Numbered from the stretch's first letter, positions 1,922 to 19,087 are shown. The stretch: DNA of 19,087 nt from Paramicrosporidium saccamoebae KSL3 (GCA_002794465.1 MTSL01000191.1:26029-45115), one strand, 5' to 3'. Numbers and translations are program-made. The notes: generated from the sequence alone by a model not told the origin.

Positions 1922-4900
1922 CTAAATGGACTTTATCAAGGCCATCATGGAATTAATCTTGTCCTTCAGTGATTTCATTTGACTCTCTGGAATCCGGTCC
2001 TTTAGGGTAGCTACATGAGCCGTCAGCCCGTCTATCAATGGTGTCCACAATGATGCAGCTTCGGTGCCAATAAAGTGCCGAGATTTTGCAATCAACGAAT
2101 TTATAATAGGCAGCTCATCGCGAAAGTGCGCGACAGTGGCCTTTGCCAAAAAGCCTTCGGGATTGATGCTGGATAGATACATTGACAATAAAGACTGGAA
2201 GAGCGCGATACCCATTTTCTTCAAAATATCATCGTTCAAAGGTTTTTTCAGCACGGGCTCGACAAATCGGATTATCTTTTCTCTTGTGTAAAGTCGCGAA
2301 GTGGCGAGAAGATCCATGGTTTCAGAACTAGACACTAACTGGATCAAAGTAGACGGTGATTTGAATCGAAGCTGTTCAAAGAATGACAAAAAATTGACAT
2401 CGTGAGACTTGTCACCACCTTTGATGAACTTTATCCAAATCGGATGCAAGAGGTCATTCAGGCCCGCGTCCAGATGCTGATTGCCGCTAAATACGTACCA
2501 AAAAGCCAGGAACGATCGACGCAGGTCCATAGGGCTTCCGTTTACATTTTCCGAGAGGGACTGGGTCAATGACTTTAATAAGGCGGCTGTCTCTGCTCGT
2601 GCCTCATCCGAAATTACTGCCGGTGGCTTTGAGTAGAAAGAATCAAAAATTGAAGTAACCTTTCCGACAAGTTCCTTGTCCTTTGAGTACTTTGTGTTCG
2701 CCACTTTGTCTTTTGAGACACTGTGGATTCTTAACACCTCCAAAAGCGTCGGGATCATCTTGACTTTGATGCTAAAATGCTGCTCTGGTAATGATTTTTG
2801 CACAATAATCTGTAACCAGTCGCACAATCGCTGCTTGAAATGGATTAGATTTTGTCGGCTAACATCGTTTGCCGATTGGTGGGTTTTGCGTGCGGTCATG
2901 ATAGCTGAAAGCTGCATATCTAATAGTTCCAATTCTTTCGGATCAGCGTCCTGGATATCCATAGTTTCTGGCTCGCTAGATTCAATGTGATTTTCCGTAG
3001 CAATTCGGGGTCTCTTGGCATCTGAATCGTCCGAGCTGTCGTTGTCGTCATCTTCAGTCTCATCTTCCACTTCATCTTCCGCCTCATCCTCCATTTCATC
3101 TTCCGTCTCATCCATCATCTCGTCGTCATCCATGATTTCATTTTCGGCACCTGGAACAACAGTTAGAACACGGAAGATGGATTCATAGCTTTCACGCGTC
3201 AAAAACGGAACTAACAATCCGAACATTTCATCAGATATTTTTCGCAGTAGCGCCGAGGATCGTGCTTGCCATTGAACAAGAATGTCCACCAAGACGTCAA
3301 CTGGGTGATCCTCATCAGTAATATTGTCCAAGCCTTTCCGGAGTCTATCAACACATTCGCGCATATCATCAAAAATTGTCGCAGACGCGAGTGGATCGAG
3401 AACCAGCAAAAGACGTCCCGTCAGTGTCATGGTCATGAGCACCTGATAGTAACACTGCATATCGCTGCTTAGATTCGATTTTTCTGTTCTTTTCTGGACT
3501 CGACGGGTAATTTCAAGAGCAACATTCCACGCATCCTTCACCGGGTCATCCAAGGCTTCAAAATTCTTTTTACCAGATTTGCTGGAAAGATCGAAATGCT
3601 TATCAATAGAGCCTAGACAACACGAAAGAACTTTATCGCGACCAAAATCACATGGCAAGTGCGATAAGGACAAAATCTTAACCAGTGCACTTTGGACGCG
3701 AGATGAGATTTTGCTGTCAGCGTCTTGTCTTTCAAGTTTCATGCTAACCAGAGACGACAGAATGCTCTGGATGGCAACCACGGATGACAAAAAGGGGCTT
3801 CCAGGCTTCAATAGGTGGAGATGAAGGTCAGCAAGACGCGTTTCGGCTACGGCGGAGAGTTCCATGCTTTCTGTCGCAGAGAGAACAGTATCAAGATTTT
3901 CAACGCTTAGATCGGAAAGCATATTTGAGGCGAAATCAGTGGCATTCTCTTGAACGCATGTTCTCAACACCTCGACTGCAATCGACGGATTTTCAACAGC
4001 AAGTTGCTTGAGATTAAAAGTTTGCTGTTGGGAATTTTTAACCAAAAATTCAATAATAGATTCGCTCAATAAATCCTGAATGTCGTTTGTCTCCAGAGAA
4101 ATTAAGTCTGCTAGTAGCTTTTGTAGCACTGGTTCACCGAGTTTCGCTCTATGCATCAAAGTCTGCGAAATCTCCAGCCAGCACTGCTTAAATGCACCGG
4201 TTCCAGAAAGCGAGACGAGCAGGGAGCGGTATAACGCAAAAGCTGAAGGAGAATCGAGATGGTTAGCATCCACGCACGACAATAAGGGCAGGAACCCGAT
4301 CGGCTGTGAGAAATCAGCATCAAATCCGGCAATCTTCTGTGCGAATGACGGTAACGAGAATTTTGAACGCAGCGCAAGGACTAGGGCGATGGCTTTTGCG
4401 GAGAAACCTTCATCAGCCAGCACACACTCAACATGGGCCAAGCACACATTTCTGACCTTTTCGTCAATAGAAGACAAAATATCAACGATAGTGGATTGCG
4501 CCAAGTAGCACAAACCGTCTTTTGACTTCCAGATTCCCATGCAGTCCACAATCATTTCTTTGGAAATGTCGGCAACCGGAATATACGCTGCTAAGGCGTT
4601 AAAGGCCAATAATTTTCCAGAAAACATGGCACTTTCTTCCGTTAAATTCATTCGCGAATCACCCGAGACGGCGTCTTTTGATAATGCTTTGCGGATCCAA
4701 GACAGCATAACTGGGGCAGGTAGATCGTTTTGATATTTCTGTAAGACTGCGACAAGGGTAAAGGCGTAGCTGAGCTTGGTATGAGCAGATATGGATGCCA
4801 GACCTCGTATCAAACGTTTCAGAGTATATGTGACACCAACAGAGCATTTGCCTTTCAGCTCCCCTTGCTCATAGAGAAAAGGGGTGGTTTTCGAGATCAA

Positions 4901-5047
4901 GGTCGGGTGGCAATCTGAGTCACACAGAGACAAAATATCTATCGCTATTGCCTCAAGTGGTGCATCAAGGTTCATCAACGAGGAAAGCAGTTGGGGAAGC
5001 TGTTCGGGAACCCCATAGGCGTTACTGACGGGACTCTCGACAGTCAT
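1922..5047 (-). CDS. POL5: Pol5/MYBBP1A family nucleolar ribosome-biogenesis protein ('DNA polymerase phi' family), 1041 aa
   Basis: YTLKRLIRGLAS near the N-terminus; VDVLVDILVQWQARSSALLRKISDEMF followed by an acidic tract; then HFKQRLCDWLQI. This is the typical Pol5/MYBBP1A motif order. Single long ORF. Confidence 0.85.
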   Translation of the reverse strand: MTVESPVSNAYGVPEQLPQLLSSLMNLDAPLEAIAIDILSLCDSDCHPTLISKTTPFLYEQGELKGKCSVGVTYTLKRLIRGLASISAHTKLSYAFTLVAVLQKYQNDLPAPVMLSWIRKALSKDAVSGDSRMNLTEESAMFSGKLLAFNALAAYIPVADISKEMIVDCMGIWKSKDGLCYLAQSTIVDILSSIDEKVRNVCLAHVECVLADEGFSAKAIALVLALRSKFSLPSFAQKIAGFDADFSQPIGFLPLLSCVDANHLDSPSAFALYRSLLVSLSGTGAFKQCWLEISQTLMHRAKLGEPVLQKLLADLISLETNDIQDLLSESIIEFLVKNSQQQTFNLKQLAVENPSIAVEVLRTCVQENATDFASNMLSDLSVENLDTVLSATESMELSAVAETRLADLHLHLLKPGSPFLSSVVAIQSILSSLVSMKLERQDADSKISSRVQSALVKILSLSHLPCDFGRDKVLSCCLGSIDKHFDLSSKSGKKNFEALDDPVKDAWNVALEITRRVQKRTEKSNLSSDMQCYYQVLMTMTLTGRLLLVLDPLASATIFDDMRECVDRLRKGLDNITDEDHPVDVLVDILVQWQARSSALLRKISDEMFGLLVPFLTRESYESIFRVLTVVPGAENEIMDDDEMMDETEDEMEDEAEDEVEDETEDDDNDSSDDSDAKRPRIATENHIESSEPETMDIQDADPKELELLDMQLSAIMTARKTHQSANDVSRQNLIHFKQRLCDWLQIIVQKSLPEQHFSIKVKMIPTLLEVLRIHSVSKDKVANTKYSKDKELVGKVTSIFDSFYSKPPAVISDEARAETAALLKSLTQSLSENVNGSPMDLRRSFLAFWYVFSGNQHLDAGLNDLLHPIWIKFIKGGDKSHDVNFLSFFEQLRFKSPSTLIQLVSSSETMDLLATSRLYTREKIIRFVEPVLKKPLNDDILKKMGIALFQSLLSMYLSSINPEGFLAKATVAHFRDELPIINSLIAKSRHFIGTEAASLWTPLIDGLTAHVATLKDRIPESQMKSLKDKINSMMALIKSI
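3053..3112 (-). repeat. 12-bp coding tandem repeat, 5 copies, encoding (DExE)5 in the Pol5 acidic tract
   Basis: Minus strand GATGAGACGGAA GATGAAATGGAG GATGAGGCGGAA GATGAAGTGGAA GATGAGACTGAA = DETE DEME DEAE DEVE DETE. Confidence 0.8.
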
Positions 5048-5060
5048 ACGATAAATCCGC

Positions 5061-5070
5061 TACCCCGGTC
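5061..5070. promoter_or_regulatory. Candidate cis-element TACCCCGGTC in the 36-bp divergent POL5/RSL1D1 gap
   Basis: Sits 13 nt from each start codon. An identical 10-mer occurs at 9914-9923 before RRP12. Function is inferred. Confidence 0.5.
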
Positions 5071-5083
5071 CGGCGAAACAAAA

Positions 5084-5892
5084 ATGGAGTCGGGACGGTT
5101 GTCTGAACAGGTAAAGACGCCCTTGGTTCCTAATTCTGGTAGGCCAAAAAAGCCGTATCTGCTCTGATCAAGCACGAAAGCCTCACTTCTCTGAAAGATG
5201 CTGGTTCCAGGAAGAAGCTCATAGCAGAGGATGAAGCTGCTGCCGATAGTCTCATCTATCTCGTTATCAACTTTAGCAAAATGTCTGAAAAGTTTTCCCT
5301 TAAGCCTGTACGTATGGCCGTACCTCACCCGTTCCGTGATGTTGGTGATGAAGATTTGTCAGTGTGCATCATCACAAAGGATCCCCAGCGCTTCTTCAAG
5401 GACCTCATTAACCCACTGCAGTTAAGCTCAGTCACAAAGGTGGTGGGCATCTCCAAACTGCGCTCCAAGTTTAAGCCGTTTGAAGCCAAGAGAATGCTAT
5501 GCGCATCCTTTGATCTGTTTGCAGCTGACACTCGCATCATTCCCATGTTGCCGAAAATCCTCGGTAAGACGTTCTTTGAGAAGAAGAAGCAACCAGTGCC
5601 CGTAAACTTGACAAGCACCAACCCAGAAGAGATTAAACAAGAAATTCAGGAAGCGGTTGAAGCGACATACTTTTTCCAGACGGGAGGGTCAAATACGTCG
5701 ATTACAGTTGGCAAGTCTTCTCAAACGCCCGAGCAGTTGGCTGCGAACATTGAAGCTGTTATTAAGCAGCTTGCAGCAAAGCTTCCTTCGGGACTAAGCA
5801 CAATTCGTACTATTCATGTGAAAACCAAAGAATCTGCTGCCCTGCCGATCTATGTTCGCGACGTTTTGGCGAAAAAGGCGAGTAGCGAATGA
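5084..5892 (+). CDS. RSL1D1: Ribosomal L1 domain-containing protein (RSL1D1/Utp30/Cic1 family); 2 exons
   Basis: Exons 5084-5110 and 5143-5892; intron 5111-5142 (32 nt, GTAAAG...CTAAT...GGTAG). Product MESGRLSEQAKKAVSALIKH...KPVRMAVPHPF...VCIITKDPQ...KVVGISKLRSKFKPFEAKRMLCASFDLFAADTRIIPMLPKILGKTFFEKKKQPVPV...IHVKTKESAALPIY carries the family motifs. Confidence 0.92.
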
Positions 5893-5918
5893 TTTATTAG
5901 ATAAATACAGAATTCGAT

Positions 5919-5989
5919 TACTAGACAGTAGGTGTAGTGTGTACTAGGCAGAAGATGTGTGTACTAGGCAGTAGATGTGCTTACTAGCC
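5919..5989. repeat. About 20-bp tandem repeat (2 near-perfect plus 2 degenerate units) overlapping the MoaE stop codon
   Basis: GTGTGTACTAGGCAGAAGAT (5937-5956) and GTGTGTACTAGGCAGTAGAT (5957-5976) differ at 1 position. The TACTAG core recurs at 5919, 5942, 5962 and 5982. Confidence 0.85.
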
Positions 5990-6425
5990 TTTGGCTACCA
6001 TCTCCTTTGATTACTTTTTTCCATAGGGGCACCCGCTCCTTCATGCCCTCAGTTATCTTGTCTATGGCCAGCAGGGCATCCTTCCTGTGTTTGCTGGTCA
6101 CAACGACGACGGAAGTTACTTCCCCCACAAAGACAGTGTCTACCCGATGCACTATTGATACACTTCCAATACGTCCTTCAAGATGCAGTCTAACCTCAGA
6201 CAGCAGGCGTCTCGTCTCGCCTACAAAAAGTTCTGCACAAGTTTCATAGTCAATCCCTTGAATTCTTTCTTCCTTGCCTTGCCGTTCGTCCAGTTCTCGA
6301 ACCATGCCACAGAAGGTTGCAATAGCACCAAACTGCCCTGCATCCGACCTGATGAAAAGGTCGTGCTGTATTTGACTGACATTAATCGGTTCTGTCGTGA
6401 GGTGTACGAAATCCTGTAGAGTCAT
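5964..6425 (-). CDS. MOCS2B: Molybdopterin synthase catalytic subunit-like protein (MoaE/MOCS2B), divergent
   Basis: GAIATFCGMVRE, DYE, SIVHRV..V.VGEVTSVVVVTSKHRKDA and KERVPLWKK follow the MoaE motif order. First ATG is at 6425 (MTLQDFVHLTTEPI); the track start at 6449 is a GTG. Confidence 0.85.
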   Translation of the reverse strand: MTLQDFVHLTTEPINVSQIQHDLFIRSDAGQFGAIATFCGMVRELDERQGKEERIQGIDYETCAELFVGETRRLLSEVRLHLEGRIGSVSIVHRVDTVFVGEVTSVVVVTSKHRKDALLAIDKITEGMKERVPLWKKVIKGDGSQRLVSTSTA

Positions 6426-6464
6426 TTGTGTGGCTTTGAACCAAGCCACTGCCTGTTAAATTGA

Positions 6465-7205
6465 CTAAGAATTTACTGATCTTGTCGAAAATCTCTGTTT
6501 AAAATGATCAAGAAACGTATTATAATTGAACGAATCAGGGTCATGATTAAACCTTTGGATCCAAGAATATGAGCCAGTGGTGTACAAATCAACACAAGAA
6601 TGTACGAGCTCAAGGGCCTGTTCACGGGTAATCAAACCTCCGTCAAACTTGGCACGTACCAGGCCAAGCTGTCTCTCCTCTAATAGATCACTGAAACCTT
6701 GAGCAGCAAGACGAACCGGAGCGGCCTCGCCAAATCTTTGAAAGTCATCCAAGGTTGAGAAAACGGCGCATCCGGTAGTGCCAGTTAGATGATGCTGGAC
6801 CATAAAATTGCAGTGCCCCTTCCCCACGGCGAGAGGAATAATAAACTACGACATGTCTTAGCACCCATAACAGCCATATTGTACAGTTGGGCTTTCTTGT
6901 CCTCTCTGCAGCAGCCACTGCGAAAAGGGCGTTGAGGGAACGGAAAAGCCAACTGATAATGGCTTCTTCTCAAAATATTTTTTCCAAATGTCTGCAATAG
7001 TGTCAGAGCCTAGAACTCGAACTTTTTCCACATCAATAATGTCAGAGAGCTACGGATAAATTGGGTGGACGATTTCTAGGCTTACCTTTTGATAGAGGTT
7101 CACAGATACTCCAGAAGAGGGTGTGCTCTTTGTATATTTGTCATAATAATTTGAATGCGAAGCGAATCGTCGGGGCCATAATGATAGGTTTTTCATGGGC
7201 TGCAT
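6465..7205 (-). CDS. ATP11: Mitochondrial F1-ATPase assembly factor Atp11 (ATPAF1); 3 exons
   Basis: Exons 7205-7086, 7049-6885, 6845-6465; introns 7085-7050 (36 nt) and 6884-6846 (39 nt). Product has a presequence-like start (MQPMKNLSLWPRRFASH), then KLSDIIDVEKV...IADIWK, ESPTFIIPL, FSTLDDFQRFGEAAP and FNHDPDSFNY. An alternative in-frame ATG is at 7196. Confidence 0.88.
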
Positions 7206-7227
7206 CTCGAGCAGGGCCTTGGCGGCT

Positions 7228-7961
7228 ATGAATGACGAGCAGGTAGAGGAGCTCGAAGTGCTACGAAGCATTTACGATGACAGACTGCTAGGTATCCCTA
7301 TTCCGTATCGAGGCATCATACGACTGTGTAGAATTGGAGGATTCTCCATTGAGACTTCGGATTACCGGCATTAACGGGTACGGTGTTGGTACATTTTCGT
7401 CCAAGGCCTTTTATATCCCTAGGACTGAATCTGGAAGTGGAGTTTACACCAAACTACCCACACGAAATGCCCAAATACTCAATAATTATTACTTCCGGAA
7501 AGCTGAGCGACCTGGAAGGTCTGAACCGACATGTTTTGGAAGAGGCAGAAGGGTCTATTGGGATGGCTATGATATATACTCTCGTATCTTGCATGGAAGA
7601 TTGGCTTTCTAAGAATTGTAAATCTATGGAAGATGCAAAAGCATCTAAAAAAGAGAGCACCGAGAACAAAGAAGTGCCAATATCATTAAGGGGTGGTCCC
7701 GTCACACGGGAATCGTTTGCAGTTTGGAATGAAAAGTACCTGGGAGAACTTTGGCAAGCAGCGATGCTAAGAGACAAAAAAATTGCTGAAGCGGGCCCCT
7801 CCAAACTTACAGGCCGACAGCTGTTTGAACACAACAAGGCTTTGGTTACATCAGATGCAACATATGGCGACGAAGCAGATATCGTTGTGAATGAGGTTCT
7901 CTTTGAGGGATTGGATGATTTAGAGGTTGATGATTTTGAATATGATGATGAAAGCGAATAA
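7228..7961 (+). CDS. GIR2: RWD-domain protein Gir2/RWDD1 (DFRP2, DRG GTPase partner); 3 exons
   Basis: Exons 7228-7291, 7332-7388, 7423-7961; introns 7292-7331 (40 nt) and 7389-7422 (34 nt). Motifs EQVEELEVLRSIY, FTPNYPHEMP, GMAMIYTLV, GPVTRESFAVW, KLTGRQLFE, and an acidic C-terminus. Confidence 0.9.
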
Positions 7962-8015
7962 ATTTCTTTAGAGGCTACTATCAATCTAGCTTTAATTGGC
8001 CAAAGGACACGAACA

Positions 8016-9458
8016 ATGTTATGGCAACGCGTTCGACCTTTAATTACAACCAATCCCGGAAGAAAAGGTCATTTTTGGCTGTCGAACATGCACTCGAAAA
8101 AAGTCCCGAAGCCGGCAAAACGAGCCTCATGCTATGGGGAGAAAGATGTCTGGGCAATTTTCACGCCGTTGGCTGTTCAGCACAACTCCGTAAACTTGGG
8201 TCAAGGGTTTCCCAATATTCCTGCTCCTGACTTTGTCAAAGTCTGCAAATTTCAGCCTTTAATAATTTTGTAGGAGTCTGCCTGCAAGGCTGTAGACTCC
8301 AATTTGAATCAATATGCTCCTTCAAAGGGTCTTCCTCGTCTTAGACAAGTAGACTGGGGAGGGATCTCAACTTGTAGGCCTTGGCAGATTCGTACAGTAG
8401 CATGTTTACGCGCCAACTCGACAGAGATCGTGAAGTGCTTGTGACACAGGGAGCTAATCAGGGAATCGCCGTCGCCATGCAGGCTTTTATTGAGCCTGGA
8501 GACGAAGTGATTTTGATTGAGCCGTTCTTTGATATTTACAAACCATCCGTTGAAGTAGCGGGTGGCAAGGTAGTGACCGTCCCTCTTAGACTCAAAAAGG
8601 AATTTACTGGAGTGATATCCGCCAACGAATGGGTACTAGATTTTACTGAATTAGAAGGAAAAGTGTCTTCAAAGACCAAGGCAATCTTAATCAACAATCC
8701 CCACAACCCAACTGGAAAGCTCTTCTCCAAGGAGGAATTGCAAAAGATTGCTGATGTTGCTATTAAAAACAATTTGCTCGTGCTCTCTGATGAAGTGGTA
8801 CAATCCCATTCCATGACAATAGCATTTATAGTACGATCGCCTTGTTTACGGGCAGCCATTTGAGCGAATTGCCAACTTGCCTGGAATGTGGGAGAGAACG
8901 CTTACATTTGGCTCTGGAGGCAAGACTTTTGGGGTCACTGGATGGCGCATTGGATGGATTATTGCGCCGGATCACCTGATCAAGTACATTTTGGCCGTGC
9001 ACGCCCGCACCGTCTTCACCACCCCCACTCCCCTCCAGGATGCCGTTGCTGCCGGTTTGGAACATTGCCAAAAGAGCAACTACTTTGAAGAGACTTGCAA
9101 AGATTACCAGCGCCGCCGAGATAGCGCGATGCAAATCTTTACAGATTTGGGTCTGCCAGTTGCCGTTCCGCACGGTTCATACTTTTTCATGGTCAATACT
9201 TCAAAAATCCAAGTCGATTTGCCAAAGCGCCAGTCTGAAGAGTCTGCTGATCCAAATGTTATGGAAACCCGGGACTATGCAATGTGCCGCTGGTTGACAA
9301 CAGAGTTTGGAGTCACTGCTATTCCGCCCTCCGCTTTTTATGAACCCGAGAATAAGAGCATGGCCGAGAACTTGATTCGGATCTGTTTTTGCAAATCGGA
9401 CGAGACTCTTGAAGCTGCTCGTGAGCGTCTCCAAAAGCTGAAGCAGTACATTAACTAG
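8016..9458 (+). CDS. BNA3: Kynurenine/glutamine aminotransferase (Bna3/KYAT family, PLP class I/II); 4 exons
   Basis: Exons 8016-8240, 8274-8348, 8378-8797, 8832-9458; introns 8241-8273 (33 nt), 8349-8377 (29 nt), 8798-8831 (34 nt). Motifs VNLGQGFP, NQYAPSKG, VTQGANQG, EPFFDIY, NNPHNPTGK, SDEVYDRL (spans the third junction), GSGGKTFGVTGWRIGW (PLP lysine), IPPSAFY, RICFCK. Confidence 0.93.
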
Positions 9459-9652
9459 TGAACCGTTGTACTGGTGTCAGGATGTGAAGTGGCGGATTGA
9501 TCTGATTGCATATTAGCACTATGTTTGTAAGCCCAAAAATTGGTAGTAAACGAATGCCATATTGTCCCAGACAAATAACAGTGACAGTCCGTGGTGACTC
9601 TTCCCACCACACGCCCCTACTAGTCCTATGGCTAAGCATCTGGAGTAAGGTT

Positions 9653-9670
9653 AAAAAATTTATACCAAAA
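9653..9670 (-). terminator. Pol III terminator T-tracts downstream of tRNA-Gln
   Basis: Minus strand T4 at 9670-9667 and T6 at 9658-9653, starting 8 nt after the tRNA 3' end. Confidence 0.65.
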
Positions 9671-9678
9671 GTGAGCAA

Positions 9679-9749
9679 TGGTCTTACCGAGAATCGAACT
9701 CGGGTTACAGGATTCAGAGTCCTGGGTGCTACCGCTACACCATAAGACC
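9679..9749 (-). tRNA. tRNA-Gln (anticodon CTG), intronless
   Basis: GGTCTTA TG GTGTAGCGGTAGCAC C CAGGA CT CTG AA TCCTG TAAC CCGAG TTCGATT CTCGG TAAGACC A: perfect 7-bp acceptor stem, 5-bp anticodon and T stems, TTCG T-loop. Confidence 0.97.
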
Positions 9750-9913
9750 GCATTGAAAGTTGCAAATTATAATATCATAACCCTCAGTTAAAATGCCGCT
9801 GGTAGTGTACTGCCGCTGATATGCGACTGGGTTTTAATTGTATGCCTCATATTACATCAGTACTCTAAAGTGTGTCTCGGGGTAGTATTCTCGGTCGTGC
9901 TCTAAAAAAAGAG

Positions 9914-9923
9914 TACCCCGGTC
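9914..9923. promoter_or_regulatory. Candidate cis-element TACCCCGGTC upstream of RRP12 (inverted core copy CGGGGTA at 9878-9884)
   Basis: Identical to 5061-5070 and 11 nt before the first in-frame ATG of RRP12. Confidence 0.5.
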
Positions 9924-9934
9924 GGCCAGTTGGA

Positions 9935-12900
9935 ATGTCGCGACGGAAGGGGCGTACTACCTCTGCAGTAGAAGGGACCAAGGGTCTTCCTTCGGTCCAG
10001 ATGCAAGAGTTTGGAGCTGATGACGCCTTCCGTAGCATCAGATACAACCGAAACACTCAACTTGAGAACCAGAAGCTTGCGCTTTCCTTGCTTGAAGCTA
10101 CCGAGACTGTACGGATCTAAATAGCATAGAGTAATCTTTAGACGTTGAGAGAGCAGAAGCTCGACTTTGTGGCTGAAAACTATTTTATGGCTCTGTGGCC
10201 TCTTTTAGATAACGAAGACAAGGAGAACGCAGGTTCCATGGGAAAGGGACAAGCCTGTGATTTTAGCACCTCAGTTATATATCTCGTCTCCTTTGTTGTT
10301 CCTCAGCTCAAGACTGAGTTTATCCAAAGGGAGTACTCTCTGATATACGCCAAGCTCTCGGGCGCCCTAGAGCGTTTCGTCAGTGTTGCTCCGTTTGTTC
10401 GTTCTGCTATAGCTGTTCTACAGGCCGTCCTCTGTGCCTTTGATGCTGCAGCCTGGGAAGACAAGGAATCACTGAAGGAACTGTTATCCCACCTTTTGCA
10501 GCTCGCAGTTGATCCCCGACCCAAGGTGCGCAAGCTTGCTCAGGATTCAGTGTTGGCCTTTTGCCGCTGCGATGCCTTTGTCAGCGGCGACCATCCTGCA
10601 AAGGGAGACGTTTTGAATTTTTTTACCGGACTGCTTCAGCGCGCCTCTCGAAAAGACTCAGTGGATGCACTTCATATAATTCCTTTGCTGCGTTCCATGG
10701 CACCGCAGATGACACACGAAGAAGTCACGGCCTTGGCTGTTCCACTTTTAAATACTGCAGGCTTGGGTAATAACCACCTCACGATTGCTGTCTATAACTT
10801 TGTTGCTTTACTGGGTGACATGTGTCTTGGTTCCAGACCGGATCTCCTCACTGCTGATTGTTCTCGAATTATGATGAAATTTATTCAGCAGCAGCGTCCA
10901 GACGTCACGGTGTCTGATCTCATCCCTGCCTGGCTTAATGTTTACTGCAAAGTTCTTCGTGTCAACTCGCTGTTGGACAATACTGTTGATTTGTCTCAAA
11001 ATTTCAATCTAATCTTGGAGTACTTGGTGTCCACAGAAGCGAACATTCTCCAATCTATCGAGGAGGGCCTTCGTCTTGTCTATTGCCTGGTGGCAGTAGA
11101 ATCACTTGGTGCAGTCATCTGCCAAGAGCTGGGAAAATGGCTTCACATGAAGAATGCCGCCGTGGCACCGTACGTCATTCGTAGTATTGGTGATTTCTGT
11201 CGAGAATCAGGCTTTGACGTGTTACAATGTTCACAAGAGTTGCTCAAATTGCTAGCCGAGATGCATGATTCGAAGCAAGCCAAGCACGCTTTTCTAATTG
11301 AAAAGGCGATCGGCCAATACGTTTCTCGTTACGGGCCTGAGGCTATCCTTGAAGTTATTCCACTGAACCTTGATGGCCACGCTGCTCCTCGCGCATGGCT
11401 CCTCCCAGTTTTAAAGGACAATGTATCCCATGCAAATCTTGAGTACTTCAAGTCGACACTTGTTCCACTTGCTGCCAAACTTGATTCTAAATGTGAGCAG
11501 TACAAAAAGTCGGGCAAGCTGAATGATGCCAAGGTTTATCAGGTTATTGTGCATCAAATTTGGGCCACCCTTCCTGCCTTTATGACGTTCCCCAAGGATT
11601 TTTCAGCAGTTATCGATGCCTTGGCACCTGTTCTTGGACAACAGCTCAACAACAATCCTTTGCTACGCCCAGTTATTGCCAATGCCTTGACGTCTTTCAT
11701 CAGGAGAGGCCAGTCTTTGGAGAATGATGTTGATAATGTTGCCGGAGAAGAACTGTGCATCCTGGCGGCTTCTGATATCCAAAAGATATCCAGTTTTAGC
11801 GGAAACTTTCTTCCCATTCTTTTCAACATTTACGGCACCACTGAGCCAGAACAGCGTGGATATCTATTGACTTGTATTGAGGCCTTCCTTAGCATCACAC
11901 CGATTGAGACGATCCACAACTACTTTGAACGCATCGTCGCTCGACTCCAAGCTCAAAGTGGCCATCCTGATGAATTGATTTCTCTGCTAGAAATTTCTTC
12001 CGTCCTTGTTGTTCGTTTGGATGTCACCAAGGACTACGCAGGGTTGATGAGTGTTATTCTTCCCTTGATGTCTAGCACCGAAGTTTCTGTCCAAAAGCGT
12101 GCATACCGCGTTGTTGGCGATTTGCTGTCACGTGAAGACTACACAGTTGATTTAGACCAACTGGAAAAGGCGCTGATTGCTGCTTATGAAGCTCACACTA
12201 TTGACTCGGCAGTCAAAAAAGTCCGGTTCCGAGTTCTTCTCAAGTTGACTTCTCAGCTATCTGATGATTCGCTTCACATTATCCCACTGTTCCTGCCTGA
12301 AACTGTGCTTGGAACGAAGGAGGTAAACCAACAAGCCCGCCTGCTGGCATTTGAACTGCTTCTTGCGTTTGCTCGCCGCATGTCGCGTGGTGGTTTGATA
12401 ATTGCTGGAAAGACGGGTGGAATGTTGGCAAATGACACGACTGCATCACTTGATGAATACATGACAATGCTGGTGGCTGGATTGGCTGGATCGACACCTC
12501 ACATGATTAGTGCTTCCATTATGGCAATTGCTCGTGTTTTATTTGAAATGCGATCTTCCATCAACGCCGAATTGCTGTCGGTACTTTTTGGTGATATTAT
12601 CTCCATCCTCCACTCGCCTTCCCGTGAGGTAGTTAAATCTGCTCTTGGGTTTATCAAGGTGACGCTTGCGTCTGTCCACAAAACTGACGACGGGGTCGAT
12701 TTACTGGACGGGCATTTGGGAGAGCTTATCAATGGACTATTGACCTGGTCAAATGAGCACCATCAGCAATTCAAGGTCCGTGTCCGTCACTTGATGGAAC
12801 GTCTCGTTCGTCGTTTTGGATTTGAGCGCGTCTGGGAATTGACTCCAGTTGCTCACCAAAAGCTGTTGACTAATATTCGCAAAAGACGCGAGAGATTAAA

Positions 12901-13549
12901 GCGCCAAAAGCAACAAGGAGGGGTCCCTGAGAATGATACTGCAGAGCCAGAATATGATGGCGACAAATTTGATTCGATAACTAACATTAGCATGATTACC
13001 AAGGCCGGTGCTGCTGGCCTTCGTGCTTCTTCAAAATTCGAGTCGGCCCTCAATGATTCTGACAGCGAGCTTGAGGATTCTGATGAGGACGAAATCCCTG
13101 CTGATTCCATCCTTCATGATCTTGCCAACGTCGATAACGATGATGAAATTGAAACAATTCTCAGTCGTAAACTATCCTTGGCTACTTCGCTCTCACGATC
13201 TGCTCCGACAAAGAAACGTGTCGTTCGAGAGGACTCTTCTGACGATGAAAATGTTCGCTTAGATGACAGCGGTAAGATGATGATCAGCGAGGAAGACACG
13301 GAGGAGGAGAATGACGATGATCACGACGATGAACCAGCCTCTGGGAAGAAGCAAGTCCGATTTGCCAGTGAAGCGAAGCATTCGCAGAAACGCGCAAAGA
13401 AACAGCGTGGAGATGCCAAACGTCGTGACGACAAATTTGAACCTTTTTCATATCTTCCCATGACCCGTGCCACCAAGAAGAATTCCGGTCAAGCCAGTGC
13501 TAACGGCAATGGCAAAAAGACGCCTAAATACTATATGAAGAGAGCATGA
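9935..13549 (+). CDS. RRP12: Ribosomal RNA processing protein 12 (HEAT-repeat, NUC173 domain); 2 exons
   Basis: Exons 9935-10108 and 10142-13549; intron 10109-10141 (33 nt). Motifs IR...LENQKLAL.LLEA..TL.EQ, DPRPKVRKLAQ, RAWLLPVLKD, QIWATLPAF, LPILFNIY, SREVVKSALGFIKV, RRFGFE, GDAKRRDDKFEPFSYLPM. A second candidate start is at 10001. Confidence 0.95.
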
Positions 13550-15248: not shown

Positions 15249-15382
15249 ACATATTCATAAAGTTTGCGGTTGCAATCAAGGCTGGGGGCGCAAACCCTCA
15301 CATATTCATATAGTTTGCGGTTGTGATCAAGGCTGGGGGCGCGAACCCTCACACATTCATATAGTTTGCGGTTGCGATCAAG
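15249..15382. repeat. 51-bp tandem repeat, about 2.6 copies
   Basis: Units 15249-15299, 15300-15350 and partial 15351-15382; consensus ACATATTCATATAGTTTGCGGTTGYRATCAAGGCTGGGGGCGCRAACCCTC. 4 mismatches between units 1 and 2, and 2 between unit 2 and the partial unit. Confidence 0.95.
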
Positions 15383-15488
15383 ATCTTTTATTGGGGGGTT
15401 GACCTGTAGATGTACACTCTTACAGTTGCTGGTCCGTAAATATAAAATAGCTCTCTCTCACACCTCTTACACCTTCCACACATTCTTG

Positions 15489-18400
15489 TCAGTCAACCAT
15501 GAGACGGGGTGTTATGCTCATGCTCATTAATTCTTGACAGAGCAATTTAAAGGCATAGGGGATTCTGACTTGGGATATCTGGGTCTTGTTGCGACAGGCC
15601 CGACACTCAAAACTTCCTTTGCGTAGATTGGCCACCGCCATCAAGCCACATAAATCACATACAAATACACGGTATTGATCAGATACTTCAAACAGACGCT
15701 CCTTTAAAAACTGGGACGCTCCATGGGAAATCATACAATCGCGTTCCATCTCACCAAAACGAAGACCACCGTCACGGGATCTACCTTCCACAGGTTGCCT
15801 TGTCAAGATCTGGACTGGACCGCGAGCACGAGCGTGAATTTTGTCATCCACCATGTGCTTGAGTCGCTGGTAATATGTGGGACCCAAGAAGATTTGGGCC
15901 GCCAGCTTCCTCCCAGTGTGGCCGTTGTACATGACCTCGTATCCACGCTGTTGGTAGCCGTTCGCCTGAAGCATATTTGAAATTGCCTCAACTGTGACAT
16001 CGGTGAAGGGAGTTGCATCACCTTCCTCGCCCGTGAGTGCAGACACTTTACCAAGAAGACACTCGACCAAATGACCAATTGTCATACGACTAGGAATGGC
16101 GTGGGGATTAATGATAATGTCGGGAGTGATTCCCTCGGCAGTGAATGGCATATCTTCCTGTCGATAAGTGATGCCCACCGTACCCTTCTGTCCGTGTCTA
16201 CTGGCAAATTTGTCACCCATTTGAGGTTCACGTTTAGAACGGATGCGCACTTTTGTAAATTTGAATCCCTCGGCGTTCGTTGTGACCATTACCTGGTCAA
16301 CAATTCCGTTTTCCGTTGATCTCAATGGCGTGCTGGCATCACGGTGGGTGTGTTGAGCAGTACGTTGGCCAAGCTCTTCGCTATTCTCAGGCAATGGGAC
16401 TAGCTTTCCAATAATGACATCTTCGCCTGCAACCCGCGTTCCGGGAGCAACAAGTCCATCGGCTTCAATTTTTTCATAAGTTCCATGTCTCATCCTAAGA
16501 GTGTACTCCCTCTCGGGTCGTGCAAATTCCTCGGCCTGTAACATGCCAACTTTTCTCTCCTCGTCTGTATATGTTCTATAAAAAATTGATCTAAATAATC
16601 CGCGATCAATTGCACTCTGGTTCATAATGACGGAATCTTCCTGATTGTATCCAGAGTAGCAAGCAATGGCAACGATGGCATTCTGTCCGGCCGGCAACTC
16701 GCGGAAATGCAAATACTCCATGGACCGGGTTGTGACAAGAGGCTTCTGGGGATAAAACAGCAAATGTGCCATTGTATCCATACGCAGCTGATAGTTTGTC
16801 GCATAAATTCCCATCGCCTGCTTGCCCATGGCAGATTGATAAGTATTACGGGGCGACTGATTATGATCAGGGAAGGGAATGATGGAGGCACAAATTCCAA
16901 GAATCATGGACGGATGAATCTCGCAATGAGTATACTTGTTGGTGTAGGGTTCTTTCTGACGACGAGACTCGGCTAATTCATCTGGCGTCATGCAAATCAT
17001 TGCACTCTCCTCCTCTTCAACATCGATGAATTCACAGACTCCAGTTCTAACCAATTGCTCCCATCCAAAGTTGCTAATCTCCTTTTGTTGTAATTGGGCA
17101 ATGTGCGCCTTTCGCAATAGTAGTCGTTGCTGTCCGTCATCAACGATAAAAAGCGGCCGACAGCAGCGGCCGGCGTCGGTAGAAAGACGAAGCTCTTGAT
17201 CGCGAATGTCACGAACAATAGAAACTTCAGAGTTAATGTCACCGCATCTCCGGAGACGACGCAATGTACGGACAAGATGCTCCGGCTCACGATGGATACC
17301 AATCCAGCTTCCATTCAAAAGAATCTTGGTGGCTTCTGGGATGACAGCCGGCGATATTTCTTCCAAATTTTCCATGGTCCAATCTTCAAGGAATTTCAAG
17401 ATCGGCTGTGTGGAAGAGCCCACGGAAATATAAGCCATCAGAGCCAAATTCTTGACAAGACCACAGGCTTGACCTTCTGGGGTCTCAGCGGGGCATACCA
17501 TGCCCCAGTGAGTATTGTGCAGCTGACGGGGTTTGGCAAGTTTGCCTTCTCGTCCAATTGGCGTGTTTACTCGGCGAAGATGAGACAGCGTGGAAGCATA
17601 GGTGTATCGATTCAAGACTTGCGACACTCCTGCCCTGCTCATCATCCCTTTACTCTGTTCTCCCCAATTACCCGTGGCCAAGGCATACTTTAAGCCGTTA
17701 GTAATGGTGTTGGACTTGACAGCAAGAGTCAGATTAAACTCTCGATTGGTGTCGATGCACTTTTGTAGATACTTTCCAACATCCCGAGTCAGCTTACGGA
17801 AGAGAATCCGGAAAAGGAATCCCAAAAGAGGGCCACCCAGATCCATCCTCTTCTTTCCATAATGGTCGCGATCATCCAGCTCACGTCGTTCCAGGGCCAC
17901 TTGAAGCAGCTTGTTAATCATGTAGCCAAAGAAAAAGGCCTTTTTGGTCTCTACAAACTCGCTAGTTCCCAAATGGGGCAAGAATTCCTTTTGAAGAATT
18001 TCACGTGCATACTTGATACGCTTCTCTCTTGTGGCCCCCACAGTCATACCACGCTTTCCAATATAATCGAGAGCAATATTCTGTTCTTGAATCACAAATG
18101 CCTCTTCAATGCAAGGCTTTAACAGCTCAAGCATGTGCTGGTCCTTGAGTTCATGACAAATGTGCTCTAAAATATCTCGATCCGAGACGATTCCCAGTGC
18201 ACGGAACACGACAAAAATCGGAATGTCTTGTTTGATGTATGGCAGGGTGCAGCGGATATATTGGCCAGAGACGCCGCGTTCTGTCGAGCGAGACATTTTA
18301 ATAGCAAGCGGACTGAGTTGACGAGTTCCCTTTTCCGCAAGAGAGCGAATCTCGGAAACGTAAGAGTATGGGGAGGGGGCTGGCTTTGAGTGGACATGTA

Positions 18401-19046
18401 CCAAATTTGTGGCCATTCTCTCTTGACCTATCAATACCTTTTCAGAGCCATTAATGATAAAGTATCCTCCTTGATCATAGGGACATTCATTCAGCTCAAT
18501 CAAATCCTTATCTCCAAGATTATTCAAAAGACAAAACTTGCTTCGAAGCATGATGGGCACACGGCCAATAAAGACTTTGGATAGTTCCTCCGTCTCAATT
18601 TCCGTCTCCTCATCTCCATCCACCTCTACCGTTCGCTTTCTCATATCAATATATAAGGGGGCCGAATACGTCAAGTCACGAAGCCGCGCCTCATTGGGAA
18701 ACATGGGCTGCGTACTTCCATCCGACTCGGTCATGGTCGGTTTGCTCAGGTACACCTGTCCAAACTCGATTTCAAACCGCTTGGGGAACTCGGAATCCAC
18801 TCCAGCAACACTACTAGTTGTCTCCAGAACGAGCCTAGAATTCTCGTCTACGATTTCTTGCATAGTGTTCTCGATAAACTCGTTGAACGAGTCTAGCTGC
18901 TGGCGGACCAGACCTTTTTCTTCAAAAAATGAAGATATGACTGTCCAACAGTCTTCTTGCGTGATGGTCTCCTCCTCTTGTTGGTCTAGTTAATGAATAA
19001 GGTTCATGAAAAAGAGATGAATACAGTTAGAGGACTTGTCGATCAT
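15489..19046 (-). CDS. RPB2: RNA polymerase II second-largest subunit; 2 exons, about 1172 aa
   Basis: Main exon 18985-15489 ([30 protein letters not shown]..., [62 protein letters not shown]). A short first exon 19046-19025 (MIDKSSN) joins in frame through the 39-nt intron 19024-18986. The exact 5' end is less certain because a CAG precedes the ATG by 4 nt and a further exon could lie outside the window. Confidence 0.97.
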
Positions 19047-19087
19047 GACCCTGGTTAATGAGCAGCTTAGTGTTATGTGTAATGTGT

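Follow-up and report, generated by a model that had tools for sequence, protein, structure and literature searches.

A conserved start-proximal sequence box at ribosome-biogenesis promoters of Paramicrosporidium saccamoebae and its relatives

The promoter signatures of ribosome-biogenesis (Ribi) genes are lineage-specific, the known cases being the polymerase A and C (PAC) and ribosomal RNA processing element (RRPE) words of yeasts and the Myc E-box of animals, a textbook instance of regulon rewiring. RRPE is found alone in Zygomycota and Basidiomycota and together with PAC in the Saccharomyces group, and about 60% of the PAC and RRPE occurrences in fungi lie within 200 nt upstream (PMC3612091). 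Animals and choanoflagellates have a CACGTG core-promoter box on Ribi genes, a holozoan regulon (PMC2570694). No Ribi promoter signature has been described before for Rozellomycota. Here, we describe a short box, TACCCCGGTC, directly upstream of the Ribi genes POL5, RSL1D1, and RRP12 in a stretch of 19,087 nt (“the window”) from the rozellomycote P. saccamoebae KSL3 (assembly GCA_002794465.1, contig MTSL01000191.1, to which POL5 and RPB2 of the window map).

Microsporidia have a CCC or GGG triplet, on either strand, before the ATG of almost all their genes, and in their ribosomal-protein genes AAATTT is followed by (T)ACCC(C/T), as in AAAAATTTTTACCCC (PMC2803860). The CCC-like motif also stands ahead of microsporidian noncoding RNA genes (PMC5499648).

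The box had been noted earlier from the window itself (hereafter the original prediction), as a 10-mer shared by the three genes and perhaps serving as a lineage-specific Ribi element. Several of its supporting statements hold: microsporidia do have CCC/GGG-like motifs near start codons, as just cited, and POL5, RSL1D1, and RRP12 are correctly identified, according to the Pfam matches given below.

The box in the window and in related genomes

The two copies of the box, the three genes, and the sequence between them are as follows.

1922–5047, − strand: POL5 (DNA polymerase phi family), 1041 aa, ATG at 5047; Pfam PF04931 DNA_pol_phi, 5.5e-35
5048–5083, unstranded: bidirectional gap between the POL5 and RSL1D1 start codons, 36 bp
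5061–5070, + strand: box copy 1, TACCCCGGTC, exact, in the centre of the gap with 13 nt on each side
5084–5892, + strand: RSL1D1/UTP30/Cic1-type ribosomal-L1-domain gene, 258 aa, 32-nt intron at 5111–5142; Pfam PF00687 Ribosomal_L1, 3.3e-47
9878–9884, − strand: partial inverted copy, CGGGGTA (TACCCCG inverted), 29 nt upstream of copy 2
9914–9923, + strand: box copy 2, TACCCCGGTC, exact, ending 11 nt before the RRP12 ATG
9935–13549, + strand: RRP12, ~1193 aa, 33-nt intron at 10109–10141; Pfam PF08161 RRP12_HEAT, 2e-61, and PF25772

These two are the only exact matches to TACCCCGGTC in the window, both on the + strand and both exactly where the original prediction had placed them. The C-rich strand of copy 1 is the sense strand of RSL1D1. 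Counted from the ATG, the CCCC run lies at −21 to −18 for RSL1D1 and at −19 to −16 for RRP12, and the GGGG run at −19 to −16 for POL5. An A/T-rich tract often precedes the box: ATAAAT (5051–5056) at copy 1, AAAAAAAGAG at copy 2, and TAAAATTT in the related genome L095. The start codons of the three genes are sound, being supported by N-termini conserved in relatives: that of RRP12, after its single intron, reads '..FRSIRYNRNTQLENQK' in all of them, that of RSL1D1 is 'MESGRLSEQ' continued across the best splice (5111–5142) by 'AKKAVSALIKHE', and that of POL5 is 'MTVES..NAYGVPEQLP'.

The repeat within this window alone is not significant. Any 19-kb window has hundreds of 10-mers in common with itself, and shuffled versions of the window gave a mean of 0.41 matches with at most one mismatch, 15 of 200 shuffles reaching two. 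The significance of the box comes from its position and from its recurrence in other genomes, not from the repeat itself.

Relatives were collected by searches with RRP12 and RSL1D1, since a POL5 homologue search returned only the query protein. The contigs are environmental or host-associated, from Logan assemblies of sequencing runs, JGI metagenomes, and NCBI GCA_047514055.1, and are labeled L003 to L095 below. The RRP12 search gave 135 homologues, the relatives having 53–34% protein identity versus ~30% for ordinary fungi; in the RSL1D1 search, where source names of homologues are UTP30, cic1, or RSL1D1, relatives were at 97–43%. Most relatives share the gene order of the window, which is eEF2, Pex13, POL5 divergent from RSL1D1, MoaE, ATP11 divergent from an RWD gene, aminotransferase, (tRNA-Gln), RRP12, RING gene, and RPB2. 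The divergent POL5–RSL1D1 pair is also found in L004, L006, L089, L092, L093, and L095, with gaps of 311, 41, 50, 83, 83, and 40 bp, respectively. The promoters compare as follows, with the distance from the box to the ATG of RRP12 or, for the gaps, of RSL1D1.

RRP12, P. saccamoebae: TACCCCGGTC, 11 nt
RRP12, L003: GACCCCGGTC, 15 nt
RRP12, L089: GACCCCGGTC, 10 nt
RRP12, L091 (67% GC genome, 34% identity): CACCCCGGTC, 22 nt
RRP12, L007: CACCCTGGTC, 35 nt
RRP12, L004: GACCCTGGTC, 57 nt
RRP12, L006: inverted GCCCCGGTC, 15 nt
RRP12, L008: inverted GCCCTGGTC, 15 nt
RRP12, L095: CACCCCGGCAA, 17 nt
RRP12, L092 (32% GC, very compact): TACCCTGGA overlapping inverted TACCCCTGT, 11 nt
POL5–RSL1D1 gap, P. 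saccamoebae: TACCCCGGTC, 13 nt
POL5–RSL1D1 gap, L089: TACCCCGGTC, 10 nt
POL5–RSL1D1 gap, L093: TACCCCGGTC, 15 nt
POL5–RSL1D1 gap, L006: GACCCCCGGTC, 14 nt
POL5–RSL1D1 gap, L004 (311 bp): four [T/A]CCCCGGC[T/C], about 20–216 nt
POL5–RSL1D1 gap, L095: TACCCCTGC, 25 nt
POL5–RSL1D1 gap, L092: TACCCCTGC, 11 nt, plus GCCCCTGT on the POL5 side

Counting P. saccamoebae, CCC[C/T]GG lies within 10–64 nt of the ATG in all 10 RRP12 promoters, with the full CCC[C/T]GGTC in 8 of them, and the box or its variant TACCCCTGC is present in all seven POL5–RSL1D1 gaps. The sister species L006 and L008 both have the RRP12 box inverted. The distance to the ATG is tight for RSL1D1 and RRP12, at 10–15 nt in most species, which agrees with the predicted position very close to the start. 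It is variable for POL5 (about 6 to 58 nt across species), so that exact centring in the gap is true of P. saccamoebae and not of the other genomes.

The sequences flanking the box are unalignable between species. In a box-anchored alignment of 16 instances, the flank columns carry 0–0.5 bits, compared with 0.6–1.1 bits in the columns that were not anchored: −1 (A), +7 (T), +8 (C), and +9 (purine). The fourth position alternates between C and T, giving CCCCGG or CCCTGG and never CCCCAG, and T, G, and C are all found before the A. What is conserved is (A)CCC[C/T]GGTC(R), with CCCCGGC and TACCCCTGC as looser forms. The 10-mer is not conserved as a whole, its leading T being variable at RRP12. 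The partial inverted copy at 9878–9884 is present as predicted, but nothing comparable was seen upstream of RRP12 in the relatives, the inverted pair of L092 excepted; its function is doubtful, and a second inverted half-site as part of the element was rejected for lack of conservation.

Specificity was assessed by several counts. The P. saccamoebae scans covered the window and its flanks, 36.9 kb of the 7.3-Mb genome, with scaffold gaps at both ends. Beyond the two reported sites this sequence contains no CCCCGGTC or CCC[C/T]GGTC, which for the other genes of the window agrees with the original prediction. CCCCGG has three matches, the third being CTATCCCCGGCAAAC in inverted orientation, 28 nt ahead of the true start of eEF2. 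The genes for DnaJ, succinyl-CoA ligase, epimerase, Pex13, the RING protein, and SET1 have no C/G run near their ATG, so the box is not a universal start signal in P. saccamoebae. L006 (20.8 kb) has two CCCYGGTC matches and likewise two of CCCCGGTC, at the same two promoters. In L004 (23.2 kb), CCCCGGY occurs four times versus 11.4 expected, each time in the 311-bp gap. A blind word count over 14 target promoters, made without the sister species L008, returned only pieces of ACCCCGGTC as the top 6-, 7-, and 8-mers; the most widely shared 8-mer, CCCCGGTC, is found in nine of these promoters and has 10 occurrences in 140 kb of loci, the tenth being the RWD-gene promoter of L091. Eleven of the 18 CCCYGGTC matches in 182 kb fall inside target windows (60 nt before each RRP12 ATG and the whole POL5–RSL1D1 gaps, 1,244 bp together), versus 0.048 expected from the density elsewhere in the 182 kb.

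Outside the target promoters, CCCYGGTC is found at no other promoter in the P. saccamoebae sequence, L004, L006, L008, or L089, and approximately 10–20 neighboring promoters in L004, L006, L089, and L091 are without the box. Only translation-related genes depart from this absence: eEF2 with its variants and, in L091 and L092, the RWD gene. The loose form CCCYGGY, counted outside the RRP12, POL5–RSL1D1, eEF2, and RPB2 promoters, occurs at ~0.2 per kb, about equally in intergenic and coding sequence. Because this is a background density, the counts were made with the 8-mer, and we regard the sites at eEF2 and RPB2 as tentative.

As a negative control, a metagenome scan with the RSL1D1 alignment gave 80 loci, nearly all from distant eukaryotes; the sole clade member, L009, is without its promoter region, which leaves 79 (33–46% identity). 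In the 350–600 nt upstream, a loose 6–7-mer match was found in only ~14 of these 79 RSL1D1/UTP30 loci, mostly on GC-rich contigs, and beyond chance the box is missing from RSL1D1 promoters of other eukaryotes. From the recurrence, the word counts, the diverged flanks, and this control, it follows that the box is real, under selection, and limited to the Paramicrosporidium-related lineage. The same promoters carry it in about ten genomes, as the conservation check suggested in the original prediction required, and we regard it as almost certainly a genuine, conserved, and lineage-specific element.

Other genes may carry weaker forms. Looser inverted forms stand before eEF2, CCCCGGC in P. saccamoebae and CCCTGGC in L006 and L089. 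The RWD/DFRP gene, whose product is a translation-linked partner of the DRG GTPase, has a full inverted box in the distant relatives L091 (GGACCGGGGATCA, 6 nt before the ATG) and L092 (AACCGGGGCTCC). Two sites in the window belong here.

7212–7218, + strand: degenerate inverted core CAGGGCC, weak, 9 nt before the true RWD/DFRP ATG (7228)
19047–19056, + strand: near match GACCCTGGTT, inverted, last base T not C; it directly adjoins the probable RPB2 ATG (19046) and may be a weak site

At RPB2, L006 and L008 both have CTACCCTGGCC/CCCTGGCC ~85 nt upstream; the site is not consistent, as L004 and L091 have no such element upstream of this gene. We treat the eEF2, RWD, and RPB2 sites as tentative members. 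Since variants are found at eEF2 and the RWD/DFRP gene, the set of carriers seems wider than Ribi alone, and the comparison suggests that it comprises ribosome production and translation. Pfam scans of unnamed open reading frames (ORFs) in the flanks of the relatives gave no further Ribi gene.

Proposed function and alternative explanations

Judged from its sequence and placement, the box is probably a transcription-factor site that acts in either orientation within the proximal promoters of ribosome-biogenesis and translation genes. A putative sequence-specific factor would read it on double-stranded DNA in the proximal or core promoter, usually 10–15 nt and at most ~60 nt ahead of the start codon. 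This factor would drive or coordinate transcription of RRP12 and, through a bidirectional promoter common to both, of RSL1D1/UTP30 and POL5. Some translation genes, namely eEF2 and the RWD gene for the DRG partner, would probably come under the same control by way of weaker variants. The box would then be the counterpart, in Paramicrosporidium and related genomes, of PAC/RRPE in yeasts and of the CACGTG box in animals. We infer binding of a factor, an effect on transcription, regulon-wide use, and the position of the transcription start site. The box occurs in both orientations, being inverted at RRP12 in L006 and L008, at eEF2, and at the RWD gene, and antisense for POL5; one copy faces two divergent genes; and there are four copies where the gap measures 311 bp (L004). 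These features, together with the spacing from the ATG, are the reasons for placing the signal in DNA rather than in an RNA leader.

An RNA-level signal in a short 5′ leader, acting on translation or stability in the manner of a 5′ terminal oligopyrimidine (TOP) tract, would suit a box 10–15 nt ahead of the ATG whose sense strand is rich in pyrimidines at RSL1D1 and most RRP12 genes; a variant also precedes eEF2, a classical vertebrate TOP mRNA. We consider this very improbable, given that the box is inverted, and thus G-rich on the sense strand, for POL5, RRP12 of L006 and L008, eEF2, and the RWD gene, and that a single copy would have to serve two opposite genes. Chance repetition without function could point to the 15 of 200 window shuffles with at least two one-mismatch matches, but is effectively refuted by the recurrence of the box, between diverged flanks, at the orthologous promoters of about ten genomes and by the 11 matches found versus 0.048 expected.

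The main alternative is that the box is a general start-site signal, the Paramicrosporidium-grade form of the microsporidian CCC-/GGG-like motif, which adjoins the transcription start of almost all genes; it would mark strong or TATA-poor promoters whatever the function of the gene. The microsporidian triplet lies directly upstream of most start codons on either strand (PMC2803860), and the box is likewise C-rich, often TACCCC, 10–15 nt from the ATG, on either strand, and often behind an A/T-rich tract, as in AAAAAAAGAG-TACCCC (RRP12), ATAAATccgc-TACCCC (RSL1D1), and TAAAATTTcgaca-CCCC (L095). The element is present in every promoter-bearing gap of L092. In the 37 kb of P. saccamoebae, five of six TACCCC occurrences are within 60 nt of an annotated ATG, including those of an unknown gene (CATACCCCCAAATG) and a kinase. 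Such a signal is rather unlikely in view of the many P. saccamoebae genes, the majority, that lack a C/G triplet near the ATG, of the conserved part being 8–9 specific bases and not a C triplet, and of the ~10–20 box-free neighboring promoters in L004, L006, L089, and L091.

Another candidate is a site for a Myb-type general regulatory factor like Reb1 or TTF-I, which would provide a nucleosome-free promoter, insulation, or a block to read-through with no tie to ribosome production. TACCCCGG resembles the yeast Reb1 site TTACCCGG, and at RRP12, in P. saccamoebae and L007, the sequence goes on as GGTCGGCCAG, near the Sal box GGTCGACCAG of mammalian TTF-I. A 36-bp bidirectional gap, and a distance of 107 bp behind the upstream gene in L006, would suit an insulator or roadblock, and sites for general regulatory factors are frequent in yeast Ribi promoters (PMC5416754). 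Against this, TTACCCG is found in none of 15 promoters examined, so the earlier comparison with the Reb1 site does not stand; the base before the A is T, G, or C, the box has one base more than the Reb1 site, the RSL1D1 copies are without the GGCCAG tail, and a general factor would be expected at many of the neighboring promoters from which the box is absent. We consider this explanation improbable.

Some observations weigh against a transcription-factor site dedicated to ribosome production. With variants also at eEF2, at the RWD gene, and perhaps at RPB2, the carriers are not cleanly a Ribi set. In L092, a CCCC[T/G]G element is found in all four promoter-bearing gaps (POL5–RSL1D1, ATP11–RWD, the ABCF ATPase, and TTI1-like–RRP12); each includes a Ribi or translation gene, yet two are shared with ATP11 and the TTI1-like gene, which fits a general promoter signal equally well, and because all four carry the element this locus cannot separate a regulon from such a signal. 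The comparative evidence concerns three Ribi genes and two promoters, always the same orthologues, so that a regulon is an extrapolation from few sites. Finally, the Poisson probability of ~1e-22 for the 11 matches overstates their independence, since the species are related and L006 and L008 are sisters.

Gene models and further observations at the locus

Copy 2 lies in the 185-bp gap between RRP12 and a divergent tRNA gene.

9679–9749, − strand: tRNA-Gln(CTG), found by ARAGORN and Rfam (67 bits)

A tRNA-Gln also adjoins RRP12 in L004 (9596–9666), L089 (14377–14447), and L092 (7116–7186), and truncated copies stand at the contig ends of L003 and L007. A link of the box to RNA polymerase III or the tRNA was rejected: L006, L008, L091, and L095 have no tRNA there and keep the box at RRP12. 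The NCBI gene model passes straight over the tRNA-Gln. This deposited model (8378–13549, 1552 aa) fuses the aminotransferase with RRP12 and looks wrong. The model at 5964–7271 (334 aa) fuses MoaE with ATP11 and overlaps the true first exon of the RWD/DFRP gene (ATG 7228), and for RSL1D1 the intron at 5111–5142 is likelier than the deposited one at 5139–5197. RPB2 probably has a 22-nt first exon (ATG 19046) followed by a 39-nt intron at 19024–18986 (feature 18986–19046, − strand); both the listed ORF and the matching deposited protein of 1124 aa start at 18863, without this exon. With several models in the window wrong, the box may help to correct start codons and fused genes, as the CCC motif did for Encephalitozoon.

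Runs of N adjoin the window, 183 before position 1 and 167 after position 19087. In the left flank (L001), the deposited eEF2 model (15413–18781) is fused to an RrnaAD gene (mitochondrial TFB-like) and lacks a one-codon first exon: eEF2 begins with an ATG followed immediately by an intron (L001 ~15336–15412, just left of the window; L006 340–430, − strand; L089 4900–4985, − strand). This intron holds CCATCCATCCATC at the same place in three species, and TCCATCCATCCCA also stands directly before the ATG of an RBM26-like gene ~4.8 kb to the right of the window in P. saccamoebae; CCATCCATCCATC/TCCATCCATCCCA may be a second conserved control or splicing element. Between Pex13 and eEF2, L006 (567–1250) and L089 (5079–5700) have an NC2-alpha/DRAP1-type histone-fold gene with several small introns, at a position that is an assembly gap in P. 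saccamoebae. In the right flank (L002 279–296 and 7008–7023, window-equivalent ~28576 and ~21846), TACCCCC is found directly before the ATG of the unknown gene (CATACCCCCAAATG) and in codons 2–4 of an LKB1-like kinase, and TATCGATA lies 4 nt before the SET1-like ATG. The L092 contig (Logan ERR12084936) has a microsporidian-like look, with 32% GC, intergenic gaps between 38 and ~145 bp, and a locus in which no introns were called, and keeps POL5–RSL1D1, ATP11–RWD, and RRP12 close together.

Comparison with described systems

The box shares with PAC (the Dot6/Tod6 site) and RRPE (the Stb3 site) the character of a short, conserved, lineage-restricted word in Ribi promoters, RRP12, POL5, and UTP30 included. 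The sequences are unrelated, however; the box lies 10–60 nt from the ATG and is known at two Ribi promoters only. None of the 15 promoters has a match to CGATGAG, AAAATTTT, TTACCCG, or CACGTG, and GATGAG occurs once, in the 311-bp gap of L004; neither PAC (GCGATGAG) nor RRPE (AAAAATTTT) is thus found there, in line with what had been noted for the window. The CACGTG (Myc) box is similarly lineage-specific and placed in the core promoter of Ribi genes, but differs in sequence.

Reb1 and TTF-I factors act at promoters and are linked to ribosomal DNA and Ribi genes. Their sites (TTACCCGG and the Sal box GGTCGACCAG) resemble the box in ACCC..GG, the likeness to GGTCGGCCAG being confined to RRP12; they differ from it in TTACCCG, which is absent, in the extra base, and in the leading T, which is not conserved. 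HomolD and HomolE are start-proximal boxes of TATA-poor ribosomal-protein promoters in fission yeast, HomolE being ACCCTACCCT. They share with the box its place near the start and the tie to the translation apparatus, and no sequence match beyond ACCCT, which makes them a lead only. Fungal zinc-cluster factors recognize a CGG triplet and Mig1/CreA the consensus SYGGGG; either site as a simple match was rejected, as the tolerated CCCTGG destroys both patterns. A palindrome, GACC-NN-GGTC, holds in L003, L004, and L089 and fails in P. saccamoebae (TACC), L006 (3-nt spacer or GCCC), and the gap copies of L004.

Full-text literature searches for CCCCGGTC, GACCGGGG, ACCCCGGT, and ACCGGGGT gave only unrelated primers and codes with no regulatory context, the accession numbers of the relatives led to no paper, and the P. 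saccamoebae paper tied to the source assembly does not mention motifs or promoters. The box is very probably a so far undescribed gene-control site of this parasite lineage. These organisms live as intracellular parasites and cannot be cultured, so there are few ways to approach their gene regulation, a conserved cis-word being one of them; with it, the published genome can readily be searched to define the regulon.

The described signal closest to the box in both form and lineage is the microsporidian CCC-/GGG-like motif; it has the same (T)ACCC look, near-ATG position, indifference to strand, and preceding A/T-rich tract. The box has its C/G triplet within ~15–20 nt upstream of the start on either strand, as that signal does, but in P. 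saccamoebae it does not stand ahead of nearly all genes, most of those in the 37 kb being without it. The microsporidian motif has three bases, marks nearly all genes, and goes with 5′ leaders of <7 nt, whereas the box has 8–9 bases and, in P. saccamoebae and its closer relatives, marks few genes per locus. A link between the two is possible, and the box provides a concrete hypothesis for the origin of the microsporidian signal. One unlikely but specific version is that the box and its putative factor were a growth-control switch of the Rozellomycota–Microsporidia stem, and that in compact, AT-rich descendants the box was cut down to (T)ACCC and came to stand before almost all genes. If so, a site that began as gene-specific, for ribosome-production and translation genes, would account for the origin of the microsporidian CCC-like signal and would lead to the factor behind it.

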